Source: Bugula neritina (taxonomy: Eukaryota > Animalia > Bryozoa). Taken from it: a stretch of 64,000 nucleotides of DNA. The notes beneath the pieces are model-generated. The model was not told the DNA's origin and ran no database searches. It was given only the letters and a program-made list of their open reading frames with translations. Location of the stretch: NCBI GenBank assembly GCA_964035545.1, contig OZ037770.1, positions 4,930,662 to 4,994,661 on the forward strand, given 5' to 3'. A program made the translations under genes and the position numbers. Positions 6,967 to 61,781 of this stretch are shown piece after piece; the stretch's first letter is position 1; each line of letters begins with the position of its first letter.

Positions 6967-6985
6967 ATTTCTACCACTGATAAAT

Positions 6986-15365: not shown

Positions 15366-15379
15366 CTTTGATGTACACT

Positions 15380-15397
15380 ATCCCACCGCTGCCACCA
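15380..15397 (-). promoter_or_regulatory. PBS of element B, complementary to the 3' end of tRNA-Leu
   Basis: TGGTGGCAGCGGTGGGAT 1 nt after the 5' LTR, complementary to ...ATCCCACCGCTGCCACCA. The same PBS is in element C (35657-35674). Confidence 0.88.
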
Positions 15398-15398
15398 C

Positions 15399-15777
15399 TG
15401 TTATAGTTTTCAGATTTAGGGTTGATGTGCCACCAAGAGAGTCTATTTATCACTAGAGAAACTTCACCAGTTATTTCGTGTAGATATCGTTATATTTAAT
15501 ACAAGAATACATAATAAAAGTCCCATGTACAACAGTAATGATACGCACGTCTATTTAGTTTACAGCACTATCCTCAACTATACATTATAAAAAACACGAT
15601 ACATTATTTCAAACCAGTTACACATCTAATCTATTTCACACTCTAGCTTCGACTGAGTTAGCAGCGGGAAACTACAATTGCTGCTAACTATCAACTACGC
15701 TAATTGGCTATCCATTGTTCCGGGTCAATTACGCGACCCTACATGTTGTGCTGCTGGTAGTTCCACGAACCACCACA
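15399..15777 (-). repeat. 5' LTR of element B
   Basis: Direct repeat of 8220-8598. Confidence 0.95.
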
Positions 15778-35686: not shown

Positions 35687-36640
35687 ATGGAGACTGAAAA
35701 TGCTGGAACTTAACCACCGGCAATAGAAGGTGAGCGTAGAGACAATGCTGTAGAGACAATGCCTGTTAACCATGTAGTAGAAGAGCGAAGGGTTCCGCGA
35801 GAACTAACTGAAGACCGCTACCGGTTAAAGGCGCCCACCTTCACGGGTGAAGAGGAGGTGGAACAGTTTATCCAAGAGTTTAGCGACGTAATGGACGTCG
35901 CCCAGTGGCCCCCTAGGGTGGCCTTGCTGAAGCTTAGAATGGCATTGATGGACAAAGCCAAGCCTTATGGGCTGGGCGTAGACATTGATAATATCTTTGC
36001 TTCTCTGCGGGCCCGCTTCGGCCTCTCTGCTACAGATGCCAGGGCCCGATTGCAGAGGTTGCGGCGTGATCCCCGCACCCCGCTGCGGGAGCACGCCGCC
36101 GCGGTCATGAAGCTGGCACAGATCGCGTACAGCAGCTTGCCCCCAGTCAACCGCGAGAGGTATACCCTCGACGCTTTCATAGCATCTGTCGACGATCTGG
36201 GTCTCCACCATCAGTTTCTAGCTAGGGGAGTCACTACCGTTGAAGATGCTCTGACTGAGGGGGAAGCTTACCTCCTAGCTAACCAAATGCATAAAAGTCG
36301 CGGAAGCTCCCGTCAAGTGGAGATAGACCGCGCAGACACGGCCGCGGGACAAGGGGAGGAAACCCCCGCCGCGGCTGCCGTGTCCCAGTTGGCGACGGCA
36401 TCGAAAGTCACTCAACTGACAGACATGCTAGCCAAGCTGATAGCAACTCTGACACCACGAACCCCAGTGAGTACCGCCCCTGAGCCCATGCGGCCACCGG
36501 CGCCGCCACAGGGAGAAACAGTCAGTTTTTGCTGGGAGTGCGGAAATCAAGGGCATTTCCGCCGATACTGTCCCTTCCTAAATCAGGGGTTAAACTACCG
36601 CGGCCCGCAGATGTTCCCACCTCCTGCGGGCCGACGATGA
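35687..36640 (+). pseudogene. gag: Gag of element C (early nonsense codon; CCHC knuckle CWECGNQGHFRRYC)
   Basis: ATG at 35687 is homologous to element B METENA; in-frame TAA at 35711; ORF 35759-36640. Confidence 0.85.
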
Positions 36641-39600: not shown

Positions 39601-40686
39601 TCCTTGGACGAGGTCAAGAGGAATGGGATACGGTGTTGCCGCAAGTCATGCGTGCATACCGTAGCACCCCACACACCAGTACTGGTGAGACCCCAAACCT
39701 CTTGATGCTCGGGAGAGAGACTCGTGTCCCTGACCATCTCACCTATCACGTTCCAGAGCAAGACAACTCGGTTCACGAGTATGCCAGTGAACTAGTGGAA
39801 CGGATGAAGGCCGCACACGATATACTGCGCCAACAGCAGTGGAAGGTGCGGCACGATGATTCCGATGAACCACTTCTCTATCAAATGGGAGATAAGGTGT
39901 GGATGGTCAATTACCGTAGGCGTCGTGGACAGGCTGATAAACTGAAGCCTGAGTTCGTAGGCCCTTACGTGGTCGTCGAGGCTATGCCCAATCATACGTA
40001 CAAGATTGAGCGCTCAGGACAGGTGTCTATCCAGAATGAGTCTCGCTTGAAACCGTATTGGGCTAGCCCCGACGGAGTGGGAGAAGCCCCCCCCGTTGTT
40101 AGAGCCCAGGAGGCAGACAACAACGCGCGGGCGACGGCGGCATGGACCTGAATACGAAGTGGTCATACCGCGGGAAGAGAACTTGGTGAGAGAGGAGCGG
40201 CAGCTTTTGTCAACAGAAGCGTGTCCGCCACCGCCAAGTCTAATTCCATCACTTCCAGAAACCGAACCGGTTCCAGAAGTGCAAACCCCCACGGAGGGAG
40301 GGGCTCCGTCCGGAGAACAAGAAGAGGTGACCGCTAACGGTGAAGTAGAGACGCCATTAGAGGCCCCTACTAACGAACCGGCAAGCGTGTCACCCCCCCT
40401 AGAAAGGGGACAGCGTACGAGGCAACCCCCCGCATACTTGAAGGACTTCATATGCGACTGCGTTAAAAGCGGCGTGTATGAAAGTCTAGGGGAAAACCGT
40501 ACAAGAAAAGTATCAAGCAAATGTGGGAGTTGTCAACACCACGGAAATATCAACTTTTGTATCGGCGGAAATAGAAACAAAATTCATCCGCCGGGTGCAC
40601 AAAGTCTTAATCACGCACCCCAACCACGTTGCTCGATCTTTTCATACGCTGATGCAGTCAAGAGTAGACGTGTTTCTAAGCAGTAG
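36589..40686 (+). pseudogene. pol: Fragmented pol of element C
   Basis: ORFs 36529-37338 (LIDSG), 37338-37841, 37615-38412 (YVDD), 38421-40151 (IN) and 40096-40686; near-identical to B pol from RT onward. Confidence 0.92.
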
Positions 40687-40966
40687 TTCAAACCATTTCA
40701 CAAATTCAGTATGTCTTACAACAACAGATCGTGGGGTGAGTTAACTATATCCTAATACGAAACTAGATTGCATCGCTCAGCTCTGACTCACTGAGTCAAT
40801 CGAGCTGGAGATAGGTTAGTGAAATACCGTAGTAAGAACTCAGTTTGACTTAGAGATTTTTATAATCTCATTGCAATACGTGTTCTATCTGACTATTCAC
40901 TACCATAAATCTCTACGAGGTAACTGAATTAGGAGTTGCCAAGCTATTCAAGCTGACAACACGGCA

Positions 40967-41782
40967 GTGTACTGTATTAACACTGTTGAAACTTTTTCAG
41001 ATTACACTCGACCCGCTACAACCAGGGTACGGGATAGAACACTTCCCGCTCCGCATCCGGAGGAGTATGCTAGTGGTGACCGGCCTGAGCCACTACGCCG
41101 CCGTTGGCGGTGGGTGTCTCCACAAACAGAGGAAGAAATAGAAACGGCCTGGGGGTCCAGAGGACGGACGAGATGCCAGATCTGTGGTGAAGAATGCGCC
41201 TCTCACCGCTCCCTTAAACTACACGTCAATGCTCATCTCCTACTAACATTCTGCCCCTGCGGGTACAATGATGTGTATCCCTACCCCGTCACCAGACACC
41301 GAGCGACGGGCTGTTTCCCTGGAGAAAACTACGTGGTCGACGCTAAGCTATACCCGGAGTTCCTCACACTTATACGACCTCTGGTGAAGAAGGCCATGCT
41401 GTTAGCTGTTCTGTCCTCGGGGTTCCAACGTGTGTTAGACAACGCCCGCCAACAATCCCCGTTGGTGTCTGACCGCCCTCAAATTACATACACCCCCGAG
41501 GAGATTACATATCCAGAAGAAGGGGAGATCTCCCCTACCCCGACGAAGAGACGAACCAGGTCCCCCAGCCCCCCCTTGCGCCGCAGACGGACACCGTCCC
41601 CAGACCCAGTCCGCCTAGCCACAGTAGAAAAACGCCTCCTACGATTACAAGAAGAATTCACCCAGCTGGCACCAGATCTACTTAATACTACCACAGGACT
41701 CTTCCAGCTAAAGGGATCCGTATGCCGTATGAAACGGAAACTGCGTACCTGCCAAGCCAAGCACCGGCGTGCCCAACAATGA
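40967..41782 (+). CDS. ORF3 of element C (zinc-finger, RS-P-rich, coiled coil), intact
   Basis: Near-identical to 8875-9696; acceptor actttttcag| at 41000. Confidence 0.75.
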   Translation: MYCINTVETFSDYTRPATTRVRDRTLPAPHPEEYASGDRPEPLRRRWRWVSPQTEEEIETAWGSRGRTRCQICGEECASHRSLKLHVNAHLLLTFCPCGYNDVYPYPVTRHRATGCFPGENYVVDAKLYPEFLTLIRPLVKKAMLLAVLSSGFQRVLDNARQQSPLVSDRPQITYTPEEITYPEEGEISPTPTKRRTRSPSPPLRRRRTPSPDPVRLATVEKRLLRLQEEFTQLAPDLLNTTTGLFQLKGSVCRMKRKLRTCQAKHRRAQQ

Positions 41783-42499
41783 CTCTGGTTCTGCTGCCGG
41801 AATAATCTGCAATTTCATCCTCTTGGGGGAACCCAGGACCTCGTGCAAATGCTTGACTGCTTGACAGGTTATTCCTTGTCTAATACCACAGCTAGCCGGT
41901 ATTCCTCGTCTATAGCTGGTCAATTGTAGGTAACAGATTGTTATAATGACTCTGCCTATTATTATGTCTCTTCCTGTATATTATGTATTATTTTTGTCCA
42001 CTGATGTATGTAGTTACTAATGAATGTTTTTTTTATATATATATCAGAAAGAGGGCTTTCTGCTGGTGGGGGCGGTGTGGTGGTTCGTGGAACTACCAGC
42101 AGCACAACATGTAGGGTCGCGTAATTGACCCGGAACAATGGATAGCCACTTAGCGTGTTTGATAGTTAGCAGCAATTACAGTTTCTCGCTGCTAAGGCAG
42201 TCGAAGCTAGAGTGTCAAATAGATTAGATGTGTAACTTGTTTGAATATAATGTATCGTTTTTATAATGTATTATTGTGTGTAAAATATACTCGTTCACTC
42301 GACTTATCCTGGTGCAGTTCTATAGCAAATAAATAGACTCTCTGGATAGCACATCAACCCTAAATCTGAAAAACATAACAATATGCAGGTATATCCATAT
42401 ATTTTGTTACTTATTCATATATAATCTATGTTTTAGATAGAGCTGTTGCGCCTTAGCTGATACTTATCACCAATCAAGACAAGCTACTAATTGGTAGCC

Positions 42500-45400
42500 A
42501 TGGCAACGGCTGGTGAGTGAAGTTAAATACTATTTTATTCACTTATATATGGAGAGTAGAAATATTTAACCTCTGAAGCTATGTTGATGTTATGCCCAAA
42601 CCATTTAATATATATCTATAAAACTATTTGATTATCATTACTTCCTATAATACTGTTTTATGTCACTAATTAGCGTAATACTGTGAAAATAGAACAATAG
42701 GTAAAATTATGCTAGCAGTTGGGTTAGAGTTGTCTTATCTCAACATAATAAACACTGAGCTATAAACTATATATTGAGTGATTATTTCGAAATAATTTAT
42801 TACTATAGAATAAAATATATGTTATATAGTTATATACAGCTATGAAAACTGAAATCCACCATATCATAAATATATTCAAGGGGTAGATGGCAGGTGTTAG
42901 AATGATAGACACCACCTGCTATAAGCACTGTGTAATAATCACACTATCACTGTATGGTGTTACAGAGAATATGAGAATCTGGTTCAGACATTCGGGTCAG
43001 CCTCTTGTAAGCTGGGAGGATGTACTGAAAGGTACTACCAAGTCATATGCTACTGCTGAGGTAAAACGTGAAGTTGGGAGATATGATATCACAGCTCTGA
43101 AACTGGAGGGGACAATTTCAAGTAACATTGGAAAGATTGCTGGTAAAGCCAGGTGTCTATGTGTTTCTAACCTCAATGACAGAGCAAGTCTGGACAAGTT
43201 AGTGTCTATTACAATAGCTGTATAATTGCTAAATGAGCTCATTTGTGTTATCAATTCAATAATAACAGATAAATTTTGCAGTTACTATTAACAGATAGCT
43301 GTATTTTACTGACAATCATGCACAATTATCAAATCTTTCTTAGCTTCTTGCCTTAACCACTTTAACTATCCATTGCTAAAATGATACACTATATATAGCA
43401 ATACTTGGTAAGCATTATATCAACATGTGAATTTTTGAATGTTTGAAATAATAACAGATTTCGCAAACCTCTCAGGTAGAGTAGATAATTTACAGCCCAC
43501 CATATTCATTATGTTTAAAAGCACAAAGCTATAGATTGTGATTTGCTTGAGATTATATTGTATTAGAGTTTCTCAAAACTTGAATATAACCATGTTTTAA
43601 TCATTTGGCATCACATACTCTAATGTTATAAACCTTAGTTAACAAATAATGTAGCACCCACTTGTACTTTACTAGTATCTATTTCTCATTAAATGCTTAT
43701 TAGCTTTCTGTATTTTACCCCGAATACACCTTGTCGGAATATATTTGTTTCTTGGATATTTTACTTGATTGGATATACAAGTAGTATATACAGTATATAA
43801 CATTATCCTGATACAGTGGATTACATATATTATGTACCTTTTATTACAGTTTATGTCAGCTGACTCAGTTAGAGAAATTAGACATAGGATGGAATTTTCT
43901 CTATACAGTACCAGAAGTTGTGTCATCATTCACATCACTTAAAGAGTTGAACATGTGGAGCTGTAAATTATCTAATCTACCTGAGAGGTCTGTTAGTCAC
44001 AATACTCTTTCTGTGTCAGAAATTCAATCACTCACATCTTTACATGCTTGTCAATTATTGCTAGAGTATATAATCCTACATTGTTATGTTCGAAGGCCTT
44101 ACAATTTTTTTTTAGTAGTTTTTCACATCCTGTGAATAACCCAGTTTCAAGGTATGAGATTGTATGGTATTATGCCACAAGACCTTTTTGTAATTTATAA
44201 CAAACAGCCATCTATAGTTTACTGGCAATCATGCCAAGTTTCGAATCTTTCTTAGCTTCTTGCCTTAACCACTTTACCTATCCATTGCTGGAATGATTTT
44301 GTTTTCTGCATTTTTACCTGGCTGACTACGCTTCAGCAATATAGTCTATACAGTGTATATTATTATCACACAGTAGACTACATATCTCTTACCCTTTATG
44401 ATTATACAGTCTATGTCAGCTGACTCAGTTAGAGGAACTATACATAGGATGGAATCCTCTCTACACAGTACCAGAAGTTGTGTCATCATTCACATCACTT
44501 GAAGAGTTGGATATGTGGGACTGTGATTTATCTACTCTACCTGAGAGGTCTGTTAGTCACAATACTCTTTCCGTTTCAGAAAGTCAATCACTCACATCTT
44601 CACATGCTTGTCAATTATTGCTAGAGTATATTATCCTACATTGTTATGTTCGAAGGCCTTACAATATTTTTCTAAGTTTTCTAAAGCATAAAGCTATAGA
44701 TTGTAATTTGTTTGAGATTATATTGTATTAGAGTTTCTCAAAACTTGAAAATAAACTTGTTTTAATCTTTTGGCATTACATACTCTAATGGTATAAACCT
44801 TCCTTAACAAATAATATAGGACCCACTTGTACTTTACTAGTATCTATTTCCCATTAAATGCTTATTAGCTTTTTGTATTTTACCCTCAATGTGCCTTGTG
44901 GGAATGAATTGGTTTCTTAGATATTTTACCTGATTGGATATACAAGTAGTATATACAGTATATAATATATTATCCTGATAGAGTGGATTACATATATTAT
45001 GTACTTTTTATTACAGTTTATGTCAGCTGACTCAGTTAAAGAAGCTGAACATAGCAAATAATCCTCTCAACACAGTACCAGAAGTTGTGTCATCACTCAC
45101 ATCACTTAAGGAGTTGAATATGTTGGACTGTAAATTATTTGCTCTACCTGAGAGGTTTGTGGAGTCTTTTTTTTATTTCAAACATTCAATAATTCACATT
45201 TTGATATAATGCTTACCAAGTATTGCTAAATAGTGTACCATTATGTACCGTTAAAAAGCACAAAGCTGTAGATTGTAATTTGCTTGAGATTATATTATAT
45301 TAAATTTTCTCGAAACTTGAAAATAACCATGTTTTAATCATTTGGTATTACACACTCTAATGGTATAAACCTTCTTTAACAAATAATGTAGCACCCACTT

Positions 45401-48400
45401 GTAGTTTACTAGTATCTATTTCCCATTAAATGCTTATTAGCTTTCTGTAGTTTACTTTGAATATGCCTTGTCGGAATAAATTTGTTTCTTGGATATTTTA
45501 CCTGATTGGATATACAAGTAGTATATACAGTATATAATATTACCCTGATACAGTGGATTACATATATTATGTACCTTTTATTACAGTCTATGTCAGCTGA
45601 CTCAGTTAGAGAAACTAAACATAAGATGGAATCCTCTCAACACAGTACCAGAAGTTGTGTCATCACTCACATCACTTGAAGAGTTGAAAATGGAGAGCTG
45701 TAACTTATCTACTCTACCTGAGAGGTTTGTGGAACACAGTCCTAAGTTATTCAATAATTCAACATTTCACATAAATTTATATGCCTACCATTTCTTTCTA
45801 AAGTGTATATAACCCAATTCTGCTATGTTAAAAACTCTAAAATGTTTCTTTTTTAAATTATCTCGTAGTTTGCCATAACCTTGAAATATCATCAGTAATT
45901 TATGGTTGTATAACATTGAATATTATTATGCCACAAGACCTTTTTGCAATTACATGTAATTAACAAACAGCCATCTACAGTTTACTGGCAACCATGTCAA
46001 TTATCGAATCTTCCTTAGCTTCTTGCCTTAATCACTTTGACTATCCATTGCTGGAATTATTGTGTTTTCTGCATTTTTTACCTGGCTGACTACGCTTAAG
46101 CAATATAGTCTATACAGTGTATAATATTATCACACAGTAGACTACATATATCTTAGCCTTTATGATTATACAGTCTATGTCAGCTGACTCAGTTAGAGAA
46201 ACTAAACATAAGATGGAATCCTCTCAACACAGTACCAGAAGTTGTGTCATCACTCACATCACTTAAAGAGTTGAATATGGGTAGCTGTAACTTATCTACT
46301 CTACCTGAGAGGTTTGTGGAACACAGTCCTAAGTTATTCAATAGTTCAACATTTCACATAAATTTATATGCCTACCATTTCTTTCTAAAGTGTATATAAC
46401 CCCATTCTGCTATGTTAAAAACTCTAAAATGTTTCTTTTTAAAATTATCTCGTAGTTTGCCATAACCTTGAAATATCATCAGTAATTTATGGTTGTATAA
46501 CATTGAATATTATTATGCCGCAAGACCTTTTTGCAATTACATGTAATTAACAAACAGCCATCTACAGTTTACTGGCAACCATGTCAATTATCGAATCTTC
46601 CTTAGCTTCTTGCCTTAATCACTTTGACTATCCATTGCTGGAATTATTGTGTTTTCTGCATTTTTTACCTGGCTGACTACGCTTAAGCAATATAGTCTAT
46701 ACAGTGTATAATATTATCACACAGTAGACTACATATATCTTAGCCTTTATGATTATACAGTCTATGTCAGCTGACTCAGTTAGAGAAACTAAACATAAGA
46801 TGGAATCCTCTCAACACAGTACCAGAAGTTGTGTCATCACTCACATCACTTAAAGAGTTGATTATGTGGAGCTGTCAATTATCTGCTCTACCTGAGAGGT
46901 TTGTGGAGTCTTTTATTATTTCAATCATTCAATAATTCACATTTTGATATAATGCTTACCAAGTATTGCTAAATAGTGTACCATTATGTACCGTTAAAAA
47001 GCATAAAGCTATAAATTGTAATTTGCTTGAGTATATATTATATTAAAGTTTCTCGAAACTTGAAAATAAACATCTTTTAATCATTTGGCATTACATTTCC
47101 TATTGCTATAAAACCTTCGTTAACAAATAATATAGCACCCACTTGTAGTTTACTAGTATCTATTCCCCATTAAATGCTTATTAGCTTTTTGTATTTTACT
47201 TTGAATATGCCTTGTCGGAATAAATTTGTTTCTTGGATATTTTACCTGATTGAATACACAAGTATAATATACAGTATATATAATATTATCCTGATACAGT
47301 GGATTACATATATTATGTACCTTTTATTACAGTCTATGTCAGCTGACTCAGTTAGAGAAGCTGAACATAGTGAAGAATCCTCTCAACACAATACCAGAAG
47401 TTGTGTCATCACTCTTATCACTTAAAGAGTTGAATATGAGGAGCTGTGAATTATCTGCTCTACCTGCGAGGTTTGTGGAACACAGTCTTTCTGGTTTCAA
47501 ACATTCAATAATTCACATGTTGATATAATGCTTACCAAGTATTGCTAATTAGTATGTCACTATGTATTGTTGAAAAGCATAAAGCTATAAATTACAATTT
47601 TCTTGAGGCTATATGATATTAGAGTTTCGCAAAACTTAAAAATAAACATGTTTTAATTATCACACATTACATTTCCTATTGCTATAAAACCTTCTTTAAC
47701 AGATAATATAGCACACACTTGTAACTATAGTTACTAGTATCTATTTCCGATTAAATGTTTATTGGCCTAGCTTTTATATTTTACTTTGAATATACCTTGT
47801 CGGAATAAATTTGTTTCTTGCATATTTTACCTGATTGAATACAGAAGTATAGTACATACTCTATATGTGACCAGTCGCGACAAAACCGGGGATGTGGCGG
47901 CGTTTATTAAGTGTAGTAAATGAAGGTTTAATTTGGAAATACTTAAATTTGAAATTAATTTCCAATTTTTAGATTTTAGACTTTTCTAGTGCAAAAAAAT
48001 CTAAGGATTTCAAAAATCATACTTTCGTAAGCATTTGATGATTCCTTCAGCTCTAAAATTGCATTTAACGTTGGTAACTAAGGCTTTCAATTTTTTAAAT
48101 GATGAAAAAATTGCGAAGTTATCGATTAAAGAAAGAAGACAATTTTAGTCACTTTCATAGCATGAGATCTTGCGAATTTATTTTTTATCAAATGAATTTA
48201 GCTTACACCTCTCTCTTCGTACTGTCAGAACCATCATATTTAAAATCGAAGGCTAGTTTTAGTTTTTCATCGTGTTCCATCCAAAGTTAGCTTTTAAGTT
48301 ACTGAGCTGTTTTGCCCTTTGGTGATAAATGCTGAACTTAATCTTTATCTTTAGCGTTCAAGCTTGAAAACCACAACAATACAGGTAATTATACTCAAAA

Positions 48401-51400
48401 CAATCATTTACGCTACTAACTTAGAATTGTTGCCAGGATTATTTGTAGTTATCAATTTAATAATATTTATACTATGACTAGGAGTAGGAGTCTGTCTTAG
48501 TCTATTCTATTCTATACTACTACTAGTAACTATTTAAATGACTTTCACTATGACTCACAGTTTGAGGTACGGTTACTCATAATGATAATCATAATGACTA
48601 TTATTCATGATTTACTGATACTGGTATTTGGTAGTAAAACCAAATGTAACTCATTAATAATACTAATAGTAATAGTATAACTTATAACTATAAGTATAAG
48701 TAATTAATAATTATAAATTCACTATTACCATTAGTATTACTATTACTTATTACTTATTAGTATTACTGTATTATTATTTGGGTCTGACTCTGAGTTTTGC
48801 CTTTGCTATTAAAACTTGATACTCATACTGATAGTATTATATTTATTGATTTATTCTATAGTTAATATTTCAATTTACATTAGACTTACTCTTACTCTTA
48901 GTTACTTTTAGCCTCTGTCTTAGATTTTGTCAATACAGTTACTGATTACTATTACTATTAGTATTAACATTTGGCCTACTAGTACTAGTCAAACTACCAG
49001 TTCCTTTTGTGATTTTTAAATTAGCTCAAAGTTTGATTTAAAATATAATGATAAAATCTTTATCACATTATGCAGGCTTACAGTTAGTGTTACTATCAAA
49101 ACTCAATTGATAATCATATTTATATTCATAAAAGCATCACCTATAATTAAATTGAAATGATAAATGTGACTAAATGTAAATGATTATAATGATGAAATAT
49201 TAATGCGAGTTCATGATGATTCTATAGTTGACTTGACTTAGTTTTTCAGTAACTTACTTTTAGTCTTATTTAGTGAGTAGTAACACTAACTGAATGCATA
49301 AATAGTCTAAACTTTTTAATTTTATTATAAGATGAGCAAAAATTTATTCATATTTTAAAGTAATTCATTGAATTCAAATTGATTTTATAGTAAATGTCTT
49401 CAATAGGTTCAGTTGCACTTAGCTAGCTTTTTTACTCAATTAAATGCCCGAGTGGTTAATAGTTATCTAAAGACATTGCTTCAAAATTGCCAATTGCAGA
49501 TATGCTAGATATTCAAGTGCATAATGTGTAATTTTACTGATAATACTATGTTAATATAGAATAATCCGATATTCTGTACATTTTAGAAAATGCACTTGTG
49601 AGGGCATTAGAGTGAAGACTTATACCTACACAACTCTACTACCTATCAATCTAATACTTCTAATGTAGACACTCCGAATTATGGCTTGCAAGGTTATGGC
49701 TTCTGCTTATTTCATTCATAAAAAGGTTTGCAGTCTTTTAATGATGTGCTTGAAAATTATCAAGCATTTTTTTAATTTAAATTGTTCTGTTTAATTCAAT
49801 AAATTTAAACGTTGATGAAATGCAGGATCACAATTAACTACTGCCATAATAGTACTACAAGAGTGTTCAGCCAACTAAATTTTTATAATATAACTGGGTA
49901 TAATTTCTAATCAAGCTACCGTTTCCTTTTGTTATTTAAAAAAAAGTCAACATTGTACTTTCAGCTCTGGAATAGACAATAAGTGGGTAGATTTGCAGAA
50001 TGGAGGTCAAGTAGCAGCATCTATAATTGCTAGAAAATCAACTGATGATAGTGATGAAGCTTTTGCCACATACATGATGTTATGTGTCCATACTCCGTAA
50101 ACTCATATTATGAAGACCAAGAAAGTAGAAAGATGATAAGTGCCTTCTCTGCAAAAACCGTAGAAGCTATCTAATTTTCTTTTCTTGATAAGAGTTAATT
50201 CAAGCATAATGGTTGTATCCAGGCTGGATTTTTTACTGCATTCAATTGGTTTTTTAAAATAATGTATTTGATGTTTTTTTTAAATGTGAATATTAATGCC
50301 TAATAAAACTCAAAAGTTCGAATAGCTGATTTTTGTTTATAATATTTTCAACATCTCAGCCAAATCAATTGCTAAATTTAGTTGCTGTTAGAGATTATAA
50401 AGATATTTATAAATGAACCTCGCATGATCTCATAATAGTCAAATAATTTTCTCATAAGTGTTCTACTCATAAAGCAATAATTATGAAACAGCACAGCTCA
50501 ATAGCTGCAGTTTGATATATTACAGAATATATTAGAGGAAAGGGAGGTATTCAATGTATAAGAGGAAGCAGCTGCCATTTTGTTTTATATGATTTCCTGC
50601 TGACTTGGATGCCTAATTTAAATATCTCAACACACAAACTTGCTGAAACATCTTCTTTGCTGGAATTGTTAAACCTTTCAACCATTAAACAAAGTAAAAA
50701 GCAAATTGGCAAATAAATTAGACAAAAAGTTTGACGGCCATATTTGACCTAATTTCATGTTGAGGCAGCATGAAATTTAGTTTAACAGAAAGCCCAAACT
50801 TTCACAATTATTTTGATACCAAATTTGTCACTATTCCTGTTATACAAAGACCCGTTGCTAAGGCTTGTAAATTGTAAACAAATAATTCTCAACTTATTCT
50901 AGAGTTGCCAACTTTAAACGCGATTTTCTCGAAACAGTAATTTAGAAATTCTAAAAACGTTGAGGTTTTTAAATACTGATATCTCGAGTTCTACTTATGC
51001 TAGAGACTTCAAATGAAGTGCAAAATGTTCAGAAAAGTCTGCTCTATCACTCTATAGTGATAACTAGATATCCAACATTTTATATACATCCCTTGCTTTG
51101 TGGTGCCAGGTCACATATACAGTATAATATAATATTATTCTGATAGATTGGACTATATATATGTACATTTTCTATACTTTTTATATTACAGCTTATGTCA
51201 GCTGATTCAGTTAGAGAAACTACACATAGCAGATAATTTTCTCTACACAGTACCAGAAGTTGTGTCATCACTCACATCACTTAAAGAGTTGTATATGTGG
51301 AACTGTAAATTATCTACTCTACCTGAGAGGTTTGTGGAACACAGTCTTTCTTGTTTCAAATACTCAATAATTCACAGGTTGATATAATGCTTACCATGTA

Positions 51401-54400
51401 TTGGGAATTAGTATATCACTATGTATTGTTGAATAGCATAATGCTATAAATTATTATTTTCTTGAGGCTATATGATATTAGAGTTTCTCAAAACTTGAAA
51501 TAAATATGTTTCAGTTATCTGGCATTAAATTTCCTATTGCTATAAAACGTTCTTCAACAAATACTATATAGCACCCACTTGTGGTTTACTAGAATCTATT
51601 TCACATTAAATGTCTTTTACTTTGAATATGCCTTGTCGCAATAAATTTGTCTTTTTTCTGCATGTTATACCTGATTGAATACACAAGTATAGTAGACAGA
51701 GTACGTACTATTATCCTGGTACAGTAAATTACATATATTATGCACTTTATATTACAGTCTATGTCAACTGAATCAGTTAGAGAAACTAGACATAGCAAGT
51801 AATTCGCTCTACATGGTACCAGAAGTTGTGTCATCACTCACATCACTCAAAGAGTTGGATATGTGGAGCTGTACATTATCTACTCTACCTGAGAGGTTTG
51901 TGGAACACAGTCTTTCTTGTTTCAAACACTCAATAATTCACACATTGATATAATGCTTACCCAGTATTGCTAATTAGTATGTCACTATGTGTTGTTGAAA
52001 AGCATAGAGTTATAAATTACATATTTCTTGAGGCTATATGGTATTAGAGTTTCTGAAAACTTGAAAATAAATATGTTTCAGTTATCTGGCATTACAAATT
52101 TCTTATTGCTATAAAACCTTTTTAACAAATAATATAGCACCTACTTGTAGTTTACTATAGTGTGTATTTCTCATCAAATGGTTATTAGAGCCTTCTGTAC
52201 TGTACTTTGAATAATATGCCTTAGAGTAATAACTTTGCTACTTGGATATTTTACTTGATTGAATATGCAGTGTTTGTTATGATACAATAGATTAAATATA
52301 TCACATACTTTATATTACAGCCTGTGCCAGCTGACTCAGTTAGAGAAACTAAACATAGGAGGGAATCCTCTCAACACAGTACCAGAAGTTGTGTCATCAC
52401 TCACATCACTTGAAGAGTTGAATATGGAGATATGTAACTTATCTACTCTACCTGAGAGGTTTGTGTGCCACAACAAATTTTATATATCACTTTTAACATT
52501 CAACAATTGTTATTTTGAAGCAGAATTTCAACACAGTAAGTACTACATTGAGATGTATATACTTTTTCTCTGCAAACCTCCATATGAATCTTCCCGTTGC
52601 TGGGCATATTGTCAATTAGCACACTATCTAGAAGTTTCCTCTGCTTCACAAGTTATTTTATAGTATTTCTATATCTTTTTGAATATTTCCCATGATAGGT
52701 TGACTGGGCTGTTTTTCAGAAGTCGTTTTAATAACTCTTTTCATTATATTATAACTATAGCTACTTCTGTACACATAATTGGTATATATTATATTATTAT
52801 TATAGTAAAACAGTTTCTTATTACTGTCTGATTGAATGCACAAGTGCTATATACAGTACATAATATAATCCTGATACAGTGAATTACATATATTGTGCGC
52901 TTTATATTACAGTCTATGTAAGCTGACTCAGTTAGAGAAACTAGACATAAGTGGAAATCCTCTCAACACAGTACCAGATGTTGTGTCCTCACTCACATCA
53001 CTTAAAGAGTTGGATATGAGGAGATGTAACTTATCTAATCTACCTGAGAGGTTTGTGTGTCACAGTCTTTCTTGTTTCAAATACTCAATAATTCACAGGT
53101 TGATATAATGCTTACCATGTATTTGGAATTAGTATATCACTATGTATTGTTGAATAGCATAATGCTATAAATTATTATTTTCTTGAGGCTATATGATATT
53201 AGAGTTTCTCAAAAGTTGAAAGTAAATATGTTTCAGTTATTTGGCATTACATTTCCTAATGCTATAAAACCTTCTTCAACAAATACTATAGCACCCACTT
53301 GTAGTTTACTAGAATATATTTCACATTAAAATCTTATTAGCTCATTCGCTTATTTAACTTTGAATTTGCCTTGTTGCAATAGTTTTGTTCCTTGGATATT
53401 TTACCTGATTGAATAGACAAGTATAGTATACACAGTATATAATATTATCCTGATACAGTAGATTACATATATTGTGCGCTTTATATTACAGTCTATGTAA
53501 GCTAACTCAGTTAAAGAAACTAGGCATAAGTGGTAATCCTCTCAACACAGTACCAGAAGTTGTGTCATCACTCACATCAATTAAAAAGTTGGATATGTGG
53601 AGCTGTGGATTATCTACTCTACCTGAGAGGTTTGTGTCATCCTAATGTTTGAAACATTCAATAATTCACATGTTGATATAATGCTTATACCAAGTATTGC
53701 TAATTAGTATGTCACTATGTATTGTTGAAAAGCATAAAGCTATAAATTAGAATTTCTTTGAGGCTATATTGTATTGGAGTTTCTCAAAACTTGAAAATAA
53801 ATATGTTTCAGTTATCTGGCATTGAATTTCCTATTGCTATAAAACCTTCTTCAACAAATACTAAAGCACCCACTTGTAGTTCACTAGAATTTTTTTCACA
53901 TTAAATGTCTTTTACTTTGAATATGCCTTGTCATACTAAATTTGTGTTTTTTTTTTCATGTTATACCTGATTGAAGACACCAGTATAGTATACGGAGTAC
54001 ATACTATTATCCTGATACAGTAGACTACATATATTACACACTTTATATTACAGTCTGTGCCAGCTGACTCAGTTAGAGAAACTACACATAAGAGACAATC
54101 CTCTCAACACAGTACCAGAAGTTGTGTCATCACTCACATCACTTAAAGAGTTGGATATGAACAACTGTAAATTATCTACGCTACCTGAGAGGTTTGTGTC
54201 ATCTTAATGTTTGAAACATTCAATAATTCACAATTTGATATAATGCCTACCAACTACCAAGTAGTGCTAATTATTATGCCATCATGTATCGTTGAAAAGG
54301 ATATAGCTACAATAGATTACAATTTTCTTGAGACTATATGACATTAAAGTTTCTCAAAACTTTAATTAAATAAACATGTTTTAATCATCTGGCATTACAT

Positions 54401-57400
54401 TCTCTATTGCTATAAACCTTTCTTTAACAAATAATTTAGCACCCACTTGAAGTTTACTAGAATATACTTCACATTAAATGCTTATTAGCTTTCTGTATTT
54501 TACTTTGAATTTGTTTTGTTGCAATACATTTGTTTCTTGGATGTTTTATCTACTTGAATATGCAAGTATAGTATACAGAGTACATCCTTTAATCCTGATA
54601 CAGTGGATTACATGTATTATACACTTTATATTGCAGTCTATGTCAGCTGACTCAGTTAGAGAAACTGGACATAGGATGGAATCCTCTCAACACAGTACCA
54701 GAAGTTGTGTCATCACTCACATCACTTAAAGAGTTGGATATGTGGAGATGTAACTTATCTACTCTACCTGAGAGGTTTGTGTGCCACAACAAATTTTATA
54801 TATCACTTTTAACATTCAATAGCTATTATTTCATAGCAATATTTCAACACAGTAAATACTACATTAGGATGCAAACCTGCAAACCTACATATGAATCTCA
54901 CCGTTTCTGGGGATATTGTCAATTAACACACTATCTATAGAAGTTTCCTCAACTTCACAAATTATTTTATAGTATTTCAATATCTTTTTTGAAATGCTTA
55001 CCATGATAGGTTGACTATGCTTTTCTTCAGAAATCGTTTTAATAACTCTTTTCAATATATTTTAACTATAGCTACTTCTGTATACAAAATTAGTTTTTAT
55101 TATATTATTTTAATAACATATTATCTCATTATTTTCAAATTAGTCAGAAAACCACTTCCTTATATTTTCAATGACATCATATATCACATACTTAACTCAA
55201 TAAACTGTATTGTGTAAGGCTCATTAGTAACAATGCATGGTGGATTATATAGTATGTTTTACTTAAATAATCACATTTGAGGTACAAATATTTCGACATG
55301 AAAGATCTGACATTATATTGCTAACCTAAGAAGAGAAAACAAATCATATATTGCCACTTTGTTTTTTGCATGCTCTACTTTAGTTGTCTCTCTCAACTCT
55401 TGGTGTAGTAGAAGCCAATTTTTATTCTATTCCTGTTCTCAAATAACCAATGAATATATTTCTTTATATCTAATTCACATTTTTAAGTGACTAATTAACT
55501 GGCCTTTAAAAGTGTAACATGTTCCTTGCAAGACGATGACTTTCCAGAGTTGTATTCTATCATAGTGAAATAATTCACAGCTTCTACTTTCTGTCTAAAA
55601 ATATGCTGCATTTATTAGAATACTTAGTGGGAAGTTGTGTCAGAAGTATTTTTTTTTATTGAAACTACTTTAATGCCTTGCGTAGGTGTTTCAGAGCTGT
55701 ACTGTGTTCCTATTTGATGATAAATTACATGTATTATGGCACATAAAACAATATTCCTTATAATTATAACATCCATATAGTAGAATATCAGTGTGAACAG
55801 TTACTCAGTGATCAGAAGTGTCAGAAGTATTTTATTTTTACTTCACATTACTTTAATGCCTTATGCAGCTGCCACAAAGCTGTAGCCTACCATGTTCCTA
55901 TTTGCTGATAACTGTATCATGGCACATACTAGAAATTTTCTTCTCTGTATTATAAAATATTATTCCTTCTAGTAGAATACTTGTGTGAACAGTTACTCAG
56001 TGATCTGCCATATAGAAAAAGATTTCTGTATGATAGTATTCTGTCTAGGGTGTGTTTTTATGACAGTACTTAGTACAAATGTAGCACTTTTCTTACCAAA
56101 TATACTTATAATTATACTGTTATATATATCTCTATGAAATACTTAAAACTTTATGCATCGTATATATATAACATGATACCCGTACATAATTGTAACTTAG
56201 ACATACTTGTTTTCTTTCCTAAATTAATGTACTAATTCAAGGTATTGTATATAAACTTGTTATAGCAACTGCAACTCAGTACTATATTATGTGTAATTAT
56301 TGTTATACTAATATTGGGTATCTTTATGAAAACTATTATATCAATTATCTGTATAGTTAGGTCTAATAATAGAAATATTATATATTGTTAGAATACAGAG
56401 ATTAAAGAAGTTACAGAAACTCAACATTTCAAGGAATAAATTCACCAGTCTCCCATCTTCAGTATGTGCATTGAGCAATCTGCACATACTGAATATATCC
56501 TACAACGAATTTATGGAATCTTTGAGCCCTGAGATACTACAGCTAACACATCTTAGGACCTTCGATACATATAGCTGTGATGCTCTTACATCTCCTCCAC
56601 TGGAAGTCTGTAAAAGAGGACTCGATGCTGTGCGACAATACTACACAGACTTGGCTAAAGGTGCTGGTAGAAATCTTCCATTTGCTACAATAGTGGTGTT
56701 GGGGAACACCATGGCAGGTAAAACCAGTCTAATCAGAACATTACAGAGCACTGACAAGAAAAGAGTTTTAACTGACAGAAGTCCTAATGCAGAGTATGAT
56801 GAGACCACAAAAGTGTTCAATGTGGAAGAGGTGGAGGTGGATGGTACAACTCTTCGTCTCATAGATATGGGAGGCCAGGAGGTCTACCATATCACATACC
56901 ATTTAACACTGAGACAGAATTGTGTACCAGTAATTGTAGTCAACATGGAGCAGTATGATCAGATTTCGAAAATGTCTACAGACAGAGAGGCTGTGAGAAA
57001 GCTGGCTTTTGACTTCATGTCTCACCTCTATCTCGCTCATCCAACTCTTGGCCCACCTAAGCTTGTTTTCACACACAAAGATAAGTTTCCGAGTGAAGTT
57101 TTCCAACGGCTTCGAAAAAAGTTTCTTAAAGTTTCTGAGAAGTTATGCAAAAATATTCTTGAAGAAGAGAACAGTTTGGAAGGTGACTTTGCTCGAATTC
57201 AACATTTCACTGCATCAAACGGAAAAGTGTTCTCCAATGACAACATATATGAAGTTGGGAAATTTGACGAGTACAAGATATTTGAATCGATTAAAAAATC
57301 TCTTCTTCAAAGTTGCCAACACTTTGTGAAGCCACTTCCAAAAGTCTGGGAGGATGTCAACAACAACATTTTGTCATTACAGACCTCACATAACACCTTT

Positions 57401-60400
57401 GATGAAATATTGGCTATGATAAACGAAAAGCAGGATAACATTGAAGCAAAACACTTGGATACGATTATCATGTACATGCATGATTGTGGCAAAGTTCTCT
57501 GGTATAAACATATTGATGCACTCAGGCCATACATATTTCACAAGATCACGGAAATTACCAAGCTACTCTGTGTCTTGTATCATCATGATCCAGACGTCTG
57601 GCAAAGTAGAGTTGATCAGTTCCAACCGTATTTTTCAATGGAAGGAGTGAGGATTGAAAAACAAGAATTTGAAGAGTTTGTGAATTCCTTTAGAATCAAT
57701 GGCTTGATGATGAAATCTCTTCTTGTATATTTGATTTGAAAAGAAACTTCGTTCACTGGTGAAAATGATGTGAAAATTGCTGTTTGCTTGCTCAGAACAT
57801 TCCGTTTATTGTATGGCCCTTTGAATAATGATTCTGAAGATCCGTACTTCATAGTCCCTCAGTTTGCCAAAGAATCCTACAGCCTCTCCTACACTCCGCC
57901 AAAGGAGCTGATGCTTTATACCGAAACGCAGTTTAATGGTCTGGCATTACCACAGCATGTCTACCATCAGATGACGGTTGGTTTGCTGGAACTATTTGCT
58001 GACAATTCTGCCACAATACAGGTGAAGAGAAATGGAGCAAATGTCTATCAAGATAAAATATATACACAGCTGATACATGACTATGAATCTAAAAGAGTTT
58101 TGCTCTACGCGTCATCTGATGCAAATAATATCACCAAAGCGTGGGAAAAACTCATTTCAGTCAACAACAACATCCTCAGACATGTTATGGAAACTTGGAC
58201 TGCCAGTCGTCCAGTCACTGCCTGCATCTGTGCTCACTGCTTACTGCTAGGTGTTCTGTGCCCTAAAAAGTCTATTCATCCTAAATGGTGTTTTCGCTCC
58301 CTGATGAAACCTACACCAGTTGTCAAGAAGTGCAGCGGATCTTCAACAATCTTGTGCAATAATGAGGAGATCCCAAGAGCTCTGATTTTTCCATGTATGT
58401 ATCACTAATATTGTTTATTACTATGATTTTATAAATGGAAACTTTTGCCTACTACATAAATGATTTTCTTTACTACAAACTCTAAACAAAACCTGCTAAA
58501 AAATTTTTAAATTTGAAAATAATCAAACAAAAGGCATTATATCTCGTGTTGTAACATTCTTGCAGTGGTTCTGTCTCAACTTATGTTTAGCTACCATTTA
58601 AGTTGATTACAGTATACATAATATGTGAGCTGGTTGTAGTATATGTAGACTGCACTGTTTTATTCAGGTGAGGCATTGTCTGAGAAAGAAACCGATGAGC
58701 TCGTGAAGCTATTGACTCAACTCAAACTTCGTAAACAACAGAATGATGCAACCAGAATTGGTATATCTGTATAATACTCACTTTATCAACCTTTAATGTT
58801 ATTAAAGAATTCAGAGATCTCAATACATGCAGCAGTTCGTTTACTCTGACTAGAATTTTTAGAAAACTGATTGTTTTTGTCAAGCGATCAAGGAAATGGC
58901 AATTTTGCTATTCTTCTGTTTTTTAAATCCTGGTGTTAGCCAATCAAATCATGTGACTGCAGATGATGATGATGATCTGAGTGATCTCTCTGAAGATGAT
59001 GACAATCTGTATCCTGATGAAGACAATGAGAAAGACATGAAGTTGATACAACCCAACCTAAAGACTACCAGAAACCTGAGGATTAAGAATCTTTTCTCAA
59101 ATGCTGAACAGGTTGGTGCATCAGTTTAGGGTCATATGTTCACCTTATTCGTTAGATTCTTATGCTTGTATAACCTATTCTTAGACAGAACATTATAAAC
59201 ACATGCATCTGTAGCAAAATGATACTATTTACTGTTAGCTTTATTATTAGGCCATGTGTGCCTCAAACATGTTTAACTAGATTTACAAATATGTCAACTA
59301 ATACTATCATTTTTAGTATATTTTTATCCAGGTGTTCAGTATGACCAGAGAGAGAGGAAGAGCTCTGATAATAAACAACAAGAACTTTGTTGAAAGACCA
59401 GACTTATGCAGGGAAGGTTCAGATGCTGATGTTGAGAATATGTCTCTCATGTTGAGATCTCTCAAGTTTGATGTTGAGACACACTCAGACCTGACAGCAG
59501 AGGTATGTTGTTATGGTGAAAACAATGCGAGCACTATTTAACCATCAAGTAGATTTTCGTATATAATGTCTTGTTTGTTCTTTAACCAAATATTTTGTAA
59601 AGTTTGTAGTATATTTTAACAAAATATTTTTTTTCACATTCACTGAATTATATCTTTAATTGTACTTAAGAATTTTTCTAAAGCTGCATTGAAAATTTTG
59701 GGTCTTGTTAGTTTTTGCTCACTTTTTGGTTTTTTGTTAGGTTGATGAGAAAACTTTTTGCTCACATTGCATATGAGTCAGCTTACTTCATTTAGTACAC
59801 ACCAGGAAATTATGACCTAACATTAAAGTTTACTCATAATCCATTGAAATTTACCATACATGGTATATTTATGTGCTGATTTTAACTACGCATAACAGAA
59901 AAGGTTAGCTAGGAGGGGATTCCCCAACATTAAAGCACAGGTCATTGTCATATGCACTTATTATTTTATATGTGCGGACCGTTACGAAAAAACTGTGACT
60001 GTCTGCAAGTCCAAATTAGCTAAATAATTAAGAAAGACATGGGAAATTAAGCATAATCAAAAATCATCTTGACTATTTAGTTGTATTTATTGATATGCTA
60101 TTAGTTTTAGGCAAAAACCTATAAATATTAGCACCTAAATTGAAAAAATAGCTAAAACTGGAGATTTCGAGTGTGTACTAAATTAAGTAAAATGACCCAT
60201 AACTCTATAGCAATTATTTGACACTTTAAATGAAGTAAATTTGTTTGACTGTTTAAATTCGTTTTCAAATTTGTAGGAAATGCTGTCTGCTGTGAAGTCT
60301 GAGGTGAAAAAGGGGAAACACAAAGAGTTTGGATGTCATATACTGGTTGTTATGACTCATGGTAGAGAAGATAACTGTATCTATGGAACTGACCTCGAGA

Positions 60401-61781
60401 AGGTCAACCTCACTGACCTGTGTGATTTGCTCACTCCTTTGTATTTCGATGGAACAAATAGAAAACCTAAGGTTGTCATACTAGAAGCCTGCAGTGGAGG
60501 TAGTTTGTAGTATAAATTTGAACTTTTAGTTCAATGGTTGAACTAGTAAATACTCCCTGTCAGAAACTAGTCATCTAATTAATTGGCGCTTTAACATGAT
60601 TCATAGTTTGGATTGCTTGAGCAACTGGGTGTCTTGAGATTGTTTAGCTCACAATATTAAGGTCGTTGTTATGTATGTGTTACAGCAAACATTGAAGTAA
60701 GCCCAGACAGATCTGGTCTTGCAGCAGATCAAGAAGAAGAAACTGAAGCTGCCTCTTCTACACCTTCTGAAGCTAATGAAGAAGACAATGATGAATATCC
60801 TGAACCGCCAAGAAAAAGAATTAGACTCATTAGACCAGTCTCACCACCAGAACCTAGAATAGAAGAGTGTAGAACTGTACGGGATATAGATGATCTTCTT
60901 GTTCTGAAGAGTAGCGTCTGCTGTAAGTATAGCAAGAGAAAGTTGTTCATTGGTTTGATAAATGTGCAGCTACAGTTTTTTTCAATCTAAAAGTCTGTTT
61001 CCTAAATTTAATCTGACCATGCTATATGTAATCTTTTTCTTGTTCTTCGTAAATTGCGAGTTAATGTTCAAAATCAAACAGAATTTAGAAAATTTCAGGC
61101 TTGCTTTGTCTACACCATGCTTTGAGTTTCATTTAATTTTATTGCAGCATCAAAGAGACATCCTGAGTATGGATCTCCTATGATTAGAGCTCTAGTATCT
61201 TCAATCTACAAACATGCCTGTCATCGTGATCTCTACACCATCTTTCAGCAGGTGAGTTTAAAATGATAATTTTGTCAATTTCTACTTGTATATAGAAATA
61301 TTTTTATGTTTAGCTGTGTGATAATTTACAATTTGCATGTCCAATGAATAAAATATAATGTAAATTAGGTAGCTTCTTAAAACGTGCTCGTATTTTTACT
61401 AATTTATATTTCTCCCACTGTGCCTGTTGTAAAGGTTAAAGCCCAACCTCAAGCTTTTCTTTAATATATTCTATAGTGGTAGCAGACAACTCTCAGGATC
61501 TACTTGCTTAGATTGAATATGAATAGGAAAGCCTAGTTTAGCAGCTGAAAGTTGTACCTTATCACAGCTATAAGTAGTTAGTTAGAACACAGTCTTACTA
61601 GTCATTACTTACTCTACAGGTGGACACTAAACTAGTGAAAAAACTGTATGCAGATGAAGATTCAGAGAGAAGCAGAAATTTGGTTGCAATCTGGAATACC
61701 CTTCCATTCAGTAAAAGACTTTACCTGTTTCCTGGCTTCGATGGGTTTAATAGAGAGGACAACTCCTCACTCAGCACATAA
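42500..61781 (+). CDS. LRR-Roc-COR-caspase (ROCO-caspase) gene, 24 coding exons, ~1757 codons; one in-frame TGA at 57737-57739 (null allele, pseudogene or base error)
   Basis: Exons: 42500-42512 (gccATGG), 42966-43152, 14 LRR exons, 56392-58394, 58668-58760, 58963-59111, 59332-59502, 60277-60499, 60686-60922, 61148-61251, 61620-61781. All introns are GT-AG with matching phases. Total 5274 nt, divisible by 3. Confidence 0.85.
43383..43508 (-). pseudogene. Inverted partial LRR cassette (3' part of exon plus donor and intron)
   Basis: Reverse complement reads AAT ATG GTG GGC TGT AAA TTA TCT ACT CTA CCT GAG AG|gtttg (NMVGCKLSTLPE), followed by the standard intron module ttcaaacattca...ttcacatgttgatataatgcttaccaagtattgc. 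Confidence 0.85.
43850..54774 (+). repeat. Array of 14 symmetric 138-nt LRR cassette exons (2 x 23-aa LRRs each) with homologous introns
   Basis: Exons 43850-43987, 44410-44547, 45017-45154, 45587-45724, 46174-46311, 46761-46898, 47333-47470, 51192-51329, 51758-51895, 52321-52458, 52913-53050, 53492-53629, 54054-54191, 54637-54774. Consensus SLCQLTQLEKLxIxxNPLNTVPEVVSSLTSLKELxMxxCxLSTLPE. All phase 2-2 with no stops. Confidence 0.95.
47864..51117. mobile_element. 3.25-kb non-autonomous TIR DNA transposon inserted in the intron between LRR cassettes 7 and 8
   Basis: Imperfect ~32-bp TIRs (TATGTGACCagtcgcgACAAAaccgGGGATGT versus TATGTGACCtggcaccACAAAgcaaGGGATGT), TA flanks, and the intron module resumes on the far side. 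No intact transposase. Confidence 0.75.
56392..58394 (+). CDS. Large exon: last LRRs, LRR C-cap, Roc GTPase, COR and Cys-rich region
   Basis: LTSPPLEVCKRGLDAVRQY cap; G1 GNTMAGKTS, G3 DMGGQEVYHITY, G4 THKD; COR PLPKVW...YMHDCGKVLWY; CICAHC. ORFs 56471-57739 and 57770-58408 are in the same frame, separated by a single TGA. Confidence 0.92.
59332..61781 (+). CDS. Caspase (peptidase C14) domain exons
   Basis: RGRALIINNKNF...REGSDAD, VMTHG, KPKVVILEACSG, DDLLV, SKRHPEYGSPMIRAL, KRLYLFPGF. Confidence 0.92.

Follow-up and report, generated by a model that had tools for sequence, protein, structure and literature searches.

A probably disabled copy of a single-chain LRR-Roc-COR-caspase gene in the bryozoan Bugula neritina and the predicted receptor family around it

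Introduction

In amphioxus, 'LRRs-caspase' shortcut proteins carrying a QACXG motif have been described and proposed to link pathogen recognition directly to apoptosis, Roc-COR not being named in them (Zhang et al., 2008; PMC2575513). Bacterial LRR-AP-GTPase-COR proteins (e.g. OQX07365.1), in which a caspase-like domain is one of at least 24 effectors, have a predicted counter-invader role, and a sponge protein combines APGTPase, COR, DED, TRADD-N and caspase, that is, with extra domains (Kaur et al., 2021; PMC8195603). The ROCO proteins of brown algae, also treated in PMC3341825, are candidate immune receptors with expanded LRR-Roc-COR genes, tandem phase-2 LRR exons, shuffling and diversifying selection (PMC11378527). 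A review of Roco proteins distinguishes three groups, none of them with a caspase (PMC6337361). Here we describe a ROCO-caspase gene in a stretch of 64,000 nucleotides of the bryozoan Bugula neritina (assembly GCA_964035545.1, contig OZ037770.1, positions 4,930,662 to 4,994,661; hereafter the window). On balance we favour the view that this gene was disabled recently and belongs to a bryozoan family encoding single-chain LRR-Roc-COR-caspase proteins, the intact members of which are predicted to be NLR-like sensors in which a Roc-COR dimer activates the tethered caspase. Our literature search, with most subscription papers outside its coverage, found neither a study of the bryozoan family nor a functional test of the design.

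Gene model and domain composition

The gene model runs on the + strand from an ATG at 42500 to a TAA at 61781 and comprises 24 exons (5,319 nt, 1,772 codons; Table 1). All introns are GT-AG and the phases agree throughout. The encoded order is 28 cassette LRRs, Roc, COR and a metazoan caspase; after the LRR cassettes follow one 2,003-nt exon (last LRRs, Roc, COR), two linker exons and five caspase exons. The phase-consistent exons that a first-pass annotation of the window had joined into one gene were all located in place on this strand, and its count of 28 or more LRRs holds, with 28 repeats in 14 cassettes and about three further ones at the start of the large exon. The window protein was searched exon by exon, and the joined chain, with an X at the stop described below, served for phase checking only; evidence on whole proteins comes from natural database proteins, not from this joined chain.

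Pfam analysis of the separate pieces returned LRR, Roc (9.9e-8), COR-A (1.4e-3, below the cut-off) and, on two exons, Peptidase_C14 (2.2e-10 and 1.4e-7); exon 2, the N-terminal cap region, had no Pfam match. The Roc nucleotide motifs G1, G3 and G4 (GNTMAGKTS, DMGG, THKD) are present and intact as annotated, DMGG and THKD being kept in 20/20 paralogues and the P-loop showing minor variants in two. An AlphaFold model of the natural homologue P0001, which is 91% identical to the large exon, has a predicted local distance difference test score (pLDDT) of 92.7 and a predicted template modelling score of 0.91. Its residues 2-600 align with LRRK2 1305-1857 (Z 26.0, root-mean-square deviation 4.0, 473 residues aligned), and it likewise matches LRRK1 and prokaryotic Roco. 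Because this model aligns end to end with the LRRK2 Roc-COR, the COR as modelled is complete in the bryozoan family, and Roc followed by COR-A and COR-B places it among the ROCO proteins. The Cys-rich stretch, annotated before as an element of its own, aligns within the end of COR-B and is rejected as a separate domain.

The exon with the catalytic His/Cys dyad (THG, EACSG), which had been read correctly, aligns with caspase-8 in the PDB and with an ancestral effector caspase. Both S1 arginine motifs (R-E-G-S-D and S-K-R-H) are present, and we take the two arginines to be equivalent in numbering to those of known caspases. The model of the Watersipora protein XP_067948342.1 (P0093), on which the arrangement of p20, linker and p10 was checked, shows, over residues 440-1413, Roc-COR followed by a helix, then a disordered tether and finally a caspase fold, the last with template modelling scores of 0.84-0.89 to caspase-9 chains. 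On these grounds the product family is a ROCO combined with a metazoan caspase, with predicted Asp-protease and GTPase activities. In keeping with the annotation, no death-fold domain (CARD or DED prodomain) was found on the scanned window pieces or on the family proteins P0080, P0093, P0194 and P0266. Unlike NLRs, which have a STAND ATPase core and C-terminal LRRs, the bryozoan protein has a Ras-like Roc at its core and its LRRs at the N-terminus; it is not an NLR, but may work like one. Variable LRRs, AP-GTPase, COR and a C-terminal effector, the parts of the LRR-AP-GTPase-COR-effector conflict systems, are all found in it.

Table 1. Features of the window belonging to the ROCO-caspase locus or inserted at it
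Feature	Position	Strand	Evidence
Coding exon 1, ATG, phase 1 donor	42500..42512	+	Gene model; first exon of Watersipora P0093 likewise short and phase-1
Exon 2, N-terminal cap region ahead of LRRs, phase 1 to 2	42966..43197	+	52 homologues in the genome, many with a Roc exon 3-39 kb downstream
14 tandem LRR exons of 138 nt, phase 2-2, two LRRs each	43850..54774	+	82-97% nucleotide identity
LRR cassette starts	43850, 44410, 45017, 45587, 46174, 46761, 47333, 51192, 51758, 52321, 52913, 53492, 54054, 54637	+	
Large exon: last LRRs, Roc GTPase, COR-A, COR-B including CxHC segment	56392..58394	+	Pfam Roc; AlphaFold model of homologue
Premature TGA, codon 1175, end of COR-A	57737..57739	+	Reading frame; paralogue alignment
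Helical linker exon, phase 1-1	58668..58760	+	RNA joints; helix in orthologue model
Acidic linker exon, phase 1-0	58963..59111	+	RNA joints; low pLDDT in orthologue model
Caspase exon 1, S1-pocket Arg, R-x-G-S-x-x-D	59332..59502	+	Pfam PF00656 2.2e-10; 101 genomic homologues
Caspase exon 2, catalytic His (THG) and Cys (EACSG)	60277..60499	+	Pfam 1.4e-7; PDB caspase-8, ancestral caspase-3/6/7; 134 genomic homologues
Acidic caspase inter-subunit linker, candidate Asp cleavage sites	60686..60922	+	Sequence; RNA joint 60922>61149
Caspase small subunit, second S1 Arg (SKRHP..GS motif)	61148..61251	+	Weak Pfam match 0.054; dN/dS 0.16 among paralogues
Last exon, caspase C-terminal strand and TAA	61620..61781	+	RNA joint 61253 to about 61629
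Ty3/gypsy-type long terminal repeat (LTR) element, 7,030 bp	35351..42380	+	LTRs 35351-35655 and 42076-42380, 99% identical; 4-bp ATAT duplication
AT-rich insertion of about 3.2 kb, imperfect terminal inverted repeats, TA-rich flanks	47866..51115 (approximate)	.	Lies in the intron that follows LRR cassette 7

Evidence for a single transcript and a single polypeptide

Joints were examined within 56300-62100 in contigs of at least 88% identity from three RNA-type runs of three studies (the RNA status of the runs being assigned by guess). The joint 58394>58668, with GT..AG, occurs in all three runs; further joints are 58757>58962, 59108/59109>59329/59330, 59500>60275, 60922>61149 and 61253>about 61629. 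None of them is among the joints listed for the DNA-like run X14, and depth within the intron, at 58434-58627, is near zero in the RNA-type runs. The series 58394>58668>58963>59332, which the first-pass annotation had named as a check, was recovered in RNA-type contigs, probably of paralogues; no single contig of the three runs spans Roc to caspase.

Database proteins carry the connection over the full length. RefSeq holds two single proteins with LRRs and a C-terminal caspase from Watersipora subatra, XP_067947674.1 (1,419 aa) and XP_067948342.1 (1,413 aa), and GenBank likewise holds KAF6024315.1 and KAF6038145.1 from B. neritina, all found via their Roc-COR or their cluster; labels on the bryozoan proteins read 'MFHAS1 homolog' or 'CASP8'. 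The gene model of XP_067948342.1 agrees with the window in exon order and in phases. Spliced joints from the Roc-COR exon onward to the caspase exons, together with these proteins, bear out the proposal of one transcript and one polypeptide.

A contrary reading, which we regard as quite improbable, holds either that ROCO and caspase are separate genes or that this copy is intact in the animal, the stop codon being an assembly error or confined to one allele. The first version could point to one Watersipora locus that RefSeq splits into an 'MFHAS1 homolog' and a caspase, but there the linker exons lie in phase (1,1,0,0,1,1,0, as in the window) with no stop between, and joints from the Roc exon to the linker come from three studies. 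Given the RNA joints, the full-length database proteins and the in-phase linker exons, two separate genes are rejected. The second version is taken up below.

Lesions of this copy

A stop had only been hinted at before; one in-frame TGA is now placed at 57737-57739. It falls on residue 382 of the 600 that make up Roc-COR and precedes the last junction by 1,632 nt and 7 junctions; a stop so placed should trigger nonsense-mediated mRNA decay (NMD). Since the monomeric RocCOR-deltaC structure covers model residues 21-425, COR-B would be lost, and the product of this copy has neither a complete COR nor the caspase. The 7 closest sampled paralogues read AGA at this codon, and a stop is found there in 0/19 aligned. 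The LTR element terminates 119 bp ahead of the ATG and in this copy cuts the coding exons off from the conserved 5' region; the sequences on either side of it match sites that are about 70 bp apart in paralogues. The nearest paralogue is about 1% divergent in the large exon, and both lesions are therefore young.

That the copy is nevertheless intact in the animal finds some support in the closest paralogue, which is 97% identical, and in the stop being a single base; yet the LTR insertion with its target duplication is a second, independent lesion. Pattern scans of metagenome contigs for the stop in other samples yielded nothing and then chance matches only, gut-derived and unlabelled records not being compared. 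Because of the stop and the LTR insertion this copy, other than first annotated, cannot make the fusion protein; it is probably a recently disabled null.

A family of about 95 genes with purifying selection on Roc, COR and caspase

In the 216-Mb, 321-contig assembly the Roc-COR exon has at least 95 scored matches, out of 173 candidates. Almost all of the matches have long open frames; they cluster on contigs C6 and C1, and others are scattered over C2-C8 (at least 8 contigs). A same-strand caspase exon lies 2-17 kb downstream in 94/95 of these loci, with coordinates paired by hand. The paralogue count called for earlier thus indicates a family of about 95, mostly intact genes, a size that fits the proposed role as immune receptors. 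Exon 2 lies anywhere from about 3 to 39 kb ahead of the Roc exon, and 752 candidate LRR cassettes are found across the genome, so that the number of LRRs probably varies between loci. Two clusters of related caspase exons (39-46% identity), at C9:9322755-9412877 and C2:30512948-30549371, have no Roc match scored nearby and may be free caspases or more distant ROCO-caspases.

Sequence-level statistics were computed on 20 paralogues (19 loci on C6 and one on C7). Pooled pairwise ratios of nonsynonymous to synonymous divergence (dN/dS) are 0.27 for Roc, 0.25 for COR and 0.16-0.41 for the caspase exons; Roc, COR and caspase are under purifying selection. Similarity to the window shifts by exon, locus L004 being 8% distant in Roc-COR and 1% in the caspase and L002 7% and 21%, which argues for exchange between paralogues.

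His and Cys are both kept in 13/19 paralogues with the catalytic exon, Cys being changed to Ser in 5 and His to Leu in 1, so that the sequences predict a mix of active-type and dead caspases, about a third (6/19) having a dead dyad. This bears on the idea that the caspase is mainly a scaffold or decoy, or gives a non-killing signal (processing of one substrate, an NF-kB-type output), the family then being sensor-adaptors like the ROCO-CARD/Death proteins of amphioxus. The 6/19 paralogues without Cys or His speak for it, as do the QACxG motif, which reads E/Q-A-C-S-G, and one Watersipora copy (L021:15887-15999) without the second S1 arginine, which hints at altered substrate specificity. We nonetheless consider it unlikely: the dyad is kept in 13/19, the first S1 arginine in 19/19 and the second in 17/17 where the small-subunit exon was aligned, the caspase exons are under purifying selection, and caspase-8, -9 and -10 deviate from QACRG too.

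Diversification of the LRR face

Each of the 14 cassettes encodes two 23-residue repeats with a nearly invariant framework, while the x positions of xxLxLxxNx vary. The proportion of nonsynonymous differences (pN) is 0.313 at 12 exposed codons and 0.043 elsewhere, with a synonymous proportion (pS) of 0.116 overall. Cassette pairs are not independent; the excess of pN at exposed codons was reached in 0 of 20,000 permutations, with a bootstrap interval of 0.08-0.31. The youngest cassette pair has 4 exon base differences, all in exposed codons, and differs at 4/449 intron bases. The ligand face of the LRRs is diversified, and the annotated variable LRR sensor stands, variation between cassettes being concentrated on exposed positions. 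All cassettes are phase 2-2, and therefore any subset is skippable in frame.

Bryozoans routinely recycle their polypides, and the family might instead be a developmental or housekeeping death switch (polypide regression, metamorphosis), gated by the level of GTP or an internal partner, its expansion being largely neutral tandem turnover. The transposon-rich region, which duplicates freely, and DAPK1 as a non-receptor death ROCO are compatible with such a switch. The focus of amino-acid change on the ligand-binding face (0 of 20,000) is, in contrast, unlike neutral turnover or a fixed internal partner, and we think this explanation very doubtful.

A hypervariable LRR face in a colonial host, with tandem clusters, also suits a protein of the same dimer mechanism whose ligand is allogeneic (colony fusion or rejection) or symbiont-derived (Endobugula-type control), not pathogen-derived, and cell death in bryozoan allo-incompatibility is mentioned in the literature (PMC8195603). 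The gene model shows no evident signal peptide or membrane segment, however, which makes recognition at the cell surface unlikely; nor does a set of about 95 loci, spread over at least 8 contigs, resemble one histocompatibility locus, and the solitary amphioxus has the same design. We therefore assign this alternative only a small probability.

Proposed mechanism

Initiator caspases are activated by dimerisation. The Roco protein CtRoco forms dimers in the absence of GTP and monomers in its presence (PMC11052575; PMC6337361), and GTP inhibits DAPK1 (PMC6337361). For a tethered caspase that needs a dimer, a GTP-bound monomer as the off state, with hydrolysis or ligand clustering as the on switch, therefore fits best; by this analogy GTP is probably the off state in intact members. 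The earlier picture of an NLR-like receptor, in which ligand-driven dimerisation fires the caspase, hence stands in part. One chain, diversified LRRs and a large family support it; simple ligand-driven dimerisation does not agree with the best-studied Roco, for which reason activation via hydrolysis or clustering appears more likely, and the caspase is dead in roughly one in three of the paralogues sampled.

We hypothesize that intact members would be cytosolic sensors of non-self or danger, uniting in one chain the roles of NLR or apoptosome and initiator caspase. At rest the protein would be a GTP-bound monomer holding an inactive monomeric caspase on its flexible acidic tether. Ligand binding at the concave LRR face, relayed through the hinge between LRRs and Roc or through the gathering of several receptors on a repetitive ligand, would favour GTP hydrolysis and a COR-B dimer, which would bring two caspase domains together and activate them. 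These would then cut their own inter-subunit linker after Asp and go on to cleave executioner caspases or gasdermin. Paralogues with Cys changed to Ser may be FLIP-like dampers or heterodimer partners. From the present copy at most an NMD-prone message would arise, coding for a stump of LRRs, Roc and COR-A that lacks both the dimerisation domain and the caspase, which is in line with birth-and-death evolution.

Six-frame searches of the genome, made exon by exon, returned one weak partial NACHT match, four CARD matches and three weak gasdermin matches, and none for NB-ARC, which suggests a scarcity of NLRs in this genome. The gasdermin-family matches (E 8e-6 to 4e-4) lie at C2:2048552, 4286293 and 4312189 and are possible substrates. 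A bolder proposal, which we offer tentatively and consider less probable than the single-chain receptor itself, is that ROCO-caspases replaced NLRs and Apaf-1 as the main class of cytosolic receptors in bryozoans. Some 100 one-chain receptors, with LRR faces diversified by cassette duplication, gene conversion and combinatorial splicing, would be tuned by dead-caspase partners and fired by the Roc-COR monomer-dimer cycle, the design having arisen independently in bacteria, amphioxus and bryozoans.

Several points weigh against a disabled member of a single-chain sensor family. The stop could be an assembly error. The RNA contigs are several percent off the window sequence and are probably transcripts of paralogues; as contigs accepted from 88% identity carry many differences, their joints speak for the family, not for this copy. 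At exposed codons pS is also high (0.26), leaving a local dN/dS of only about 1.3, and the local value of about 2 was obtained at six codons chosen after seeing the data. Exon-by-exon domain searches give lower bounds, so the scarcity of NLRs is suggested, short of proof. Finally, the nucleotide-oligomer cycle is taken over from a bacterial Roco at 14-15% identity.

If the reading of intact members as caspase-tethered sensors is true, animals possess a class of GTPase-switched receptors beside the ATPase-switched NLRs, in a phylum with almost unstudied immunity. As the caspase needs a dimer, its activity would read the Roc-COR state directly, and the family would offer a natural reporter for a question long debated for LRRK2, namely in what nucleotide and oligomer state Roc-COR switches its effector on. 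The present copy is a poor experimental subject; intact paralogues adjoin it.

Other features of the window

Three LTR retrotransposon-type elements lie at 3209-7020 (-), 8216-15777 (-) and 35351-42380 (+), the latter two being one family with an LTR similarity of 77-93%. The element at 8216-15777 has an unbroken 1,538-codon pol frame with matches to reverse transcriptase, RNase H and integrase. No long open reading frame was found in the insertion at 47866-51115. A high-copy repeat with very high contig depth in DNA and RNA runs occupies 59790-60200, in a caspase intron, and degenerate fragments resembling long interspersed elements, with no Pfam match at 1e-4, lie downstream of the gene at 62600-64000. 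At 20092-21196 (-) two Cys-containing open frames of 135 and 157 aa look CUB-like, have no Pfam match at 1e-4, and are possibly exons of another gene.

Comparison with known systems

The first-pass annotation knew of no characterised animal protein of this architecture. Such a lack of precedent is rejected by proteins of amphioxus (PMC2575513) and, with extra domains, of a sponge, besides those of bacteria (PMC8195603). A profile search of 1.84 billion representatives returned Branchiostoma floridae XP_002614028.1 with LRR-Roc-COR-A-COR-B-caspase. At least 12 amphioxus clusters from three Branchiostoma species and two hybrids show this Pfam order, further examples being XP_002601186.1 and XP_002591605.1; the models of Zhang et al. 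(2008) are possibly these same proteins (PMC2575513). Amphioxus relatives of the ROCO-caspases end in GT4, OTU or Death, and Lingula relatives carry CARD. Among the LRR-Roc-COR proteins P0210-P0241 (amphioxus) and P0144/P0189 (Lingula) the C-terminal effector is thus interchangeable, with immune-type domains (GT4, OTU, Death, CARD, caspase) in this place, a parallel to the bacterial systems described by Kaur et al. (2021).

An unrooted Roc-COR tree groups the bryozoan-like proteins in a single clade (SH-like approximate likelihood-ratio support 100); the caspase-bearing amphioxus members interleave with those bearing other effectors, and the bacterial branch is separate. The metazoan caspase matches, the introns and the tree speak against a metacaspase of bacterial type and against recent transfer of the entire fusion, and both are rejected. 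The caspase tree, built without broad references, cannot place the donor subfamily. Amphioxus and bryozoan proteins fall into separate clades of the unrooted tree, and the caspase identity between them is 29%, against 26% to mammalian caspase-4. The shared caspase introns may be ancestral to a caspase subfamily, and independent fusion in amphioxus and bryozoans is the simpler reading; one old fusion with many replacements would be the less simple alternative.

The amphioxus proteins share with the bryozoan family the domain order, caspase introns at matching positions and the proposed function. They differ in having LRRs, Roc and COR in one exon, the motif QACRG and a caspase that is one of several interchangeable effectors, and identity is only about 20% in Roc-COR and 29% in the caspase. 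The bacterial systems have the same domain order with a caspase-like effector, the top match in the Atlas being a cyanobacterial COR-CHAT protein. The bryozoan caspase is, in contrast, metazoan-type, with spliceosomal introns, and is the one effector type on about 95 paralogues, the diversity lying in the LRRs. The systems of Kaur et al. (2021) have prokaryotic hosts and swap effectors among paralogues; the present gene belongs to an animal, and such swapping is seen in amphioxus only, the caspase standing at 94/95 bryozoan loci. Brown-algal ROCOs resemble the window in their LRRs on symmetric phase-2 exons and in diversified exposed residues, but they have 72-nt one-repeat exons where the window has 138-nt two-repeat exons, they have no caspase, and alternative splicing has been shown in them.

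With MFHAS1/MASL1, LRRK1/2 and DAPK1 the bryozoan protein shares the Roc-COR fold (Z 26 to LRRK2); unlike them it has no kinase, WD40 or death domain but a C-terminal caspase, and its family is massively expanded. With the NLR inflammasome, or the Apaf-1 apoptosome, and caspase-1/-9 it shares the logic of a sensor repeat, a nucleotide switch and a caspase activated by induced proximity, whereas it uses a GTPase rather than a STAND ATPase, N-terminal LRRs, a caspase in cis and no death-fold adaptors. The design had been glimpsed in amphioxus and bacteria; what is added here is a bryozoan family of about 95 loci.

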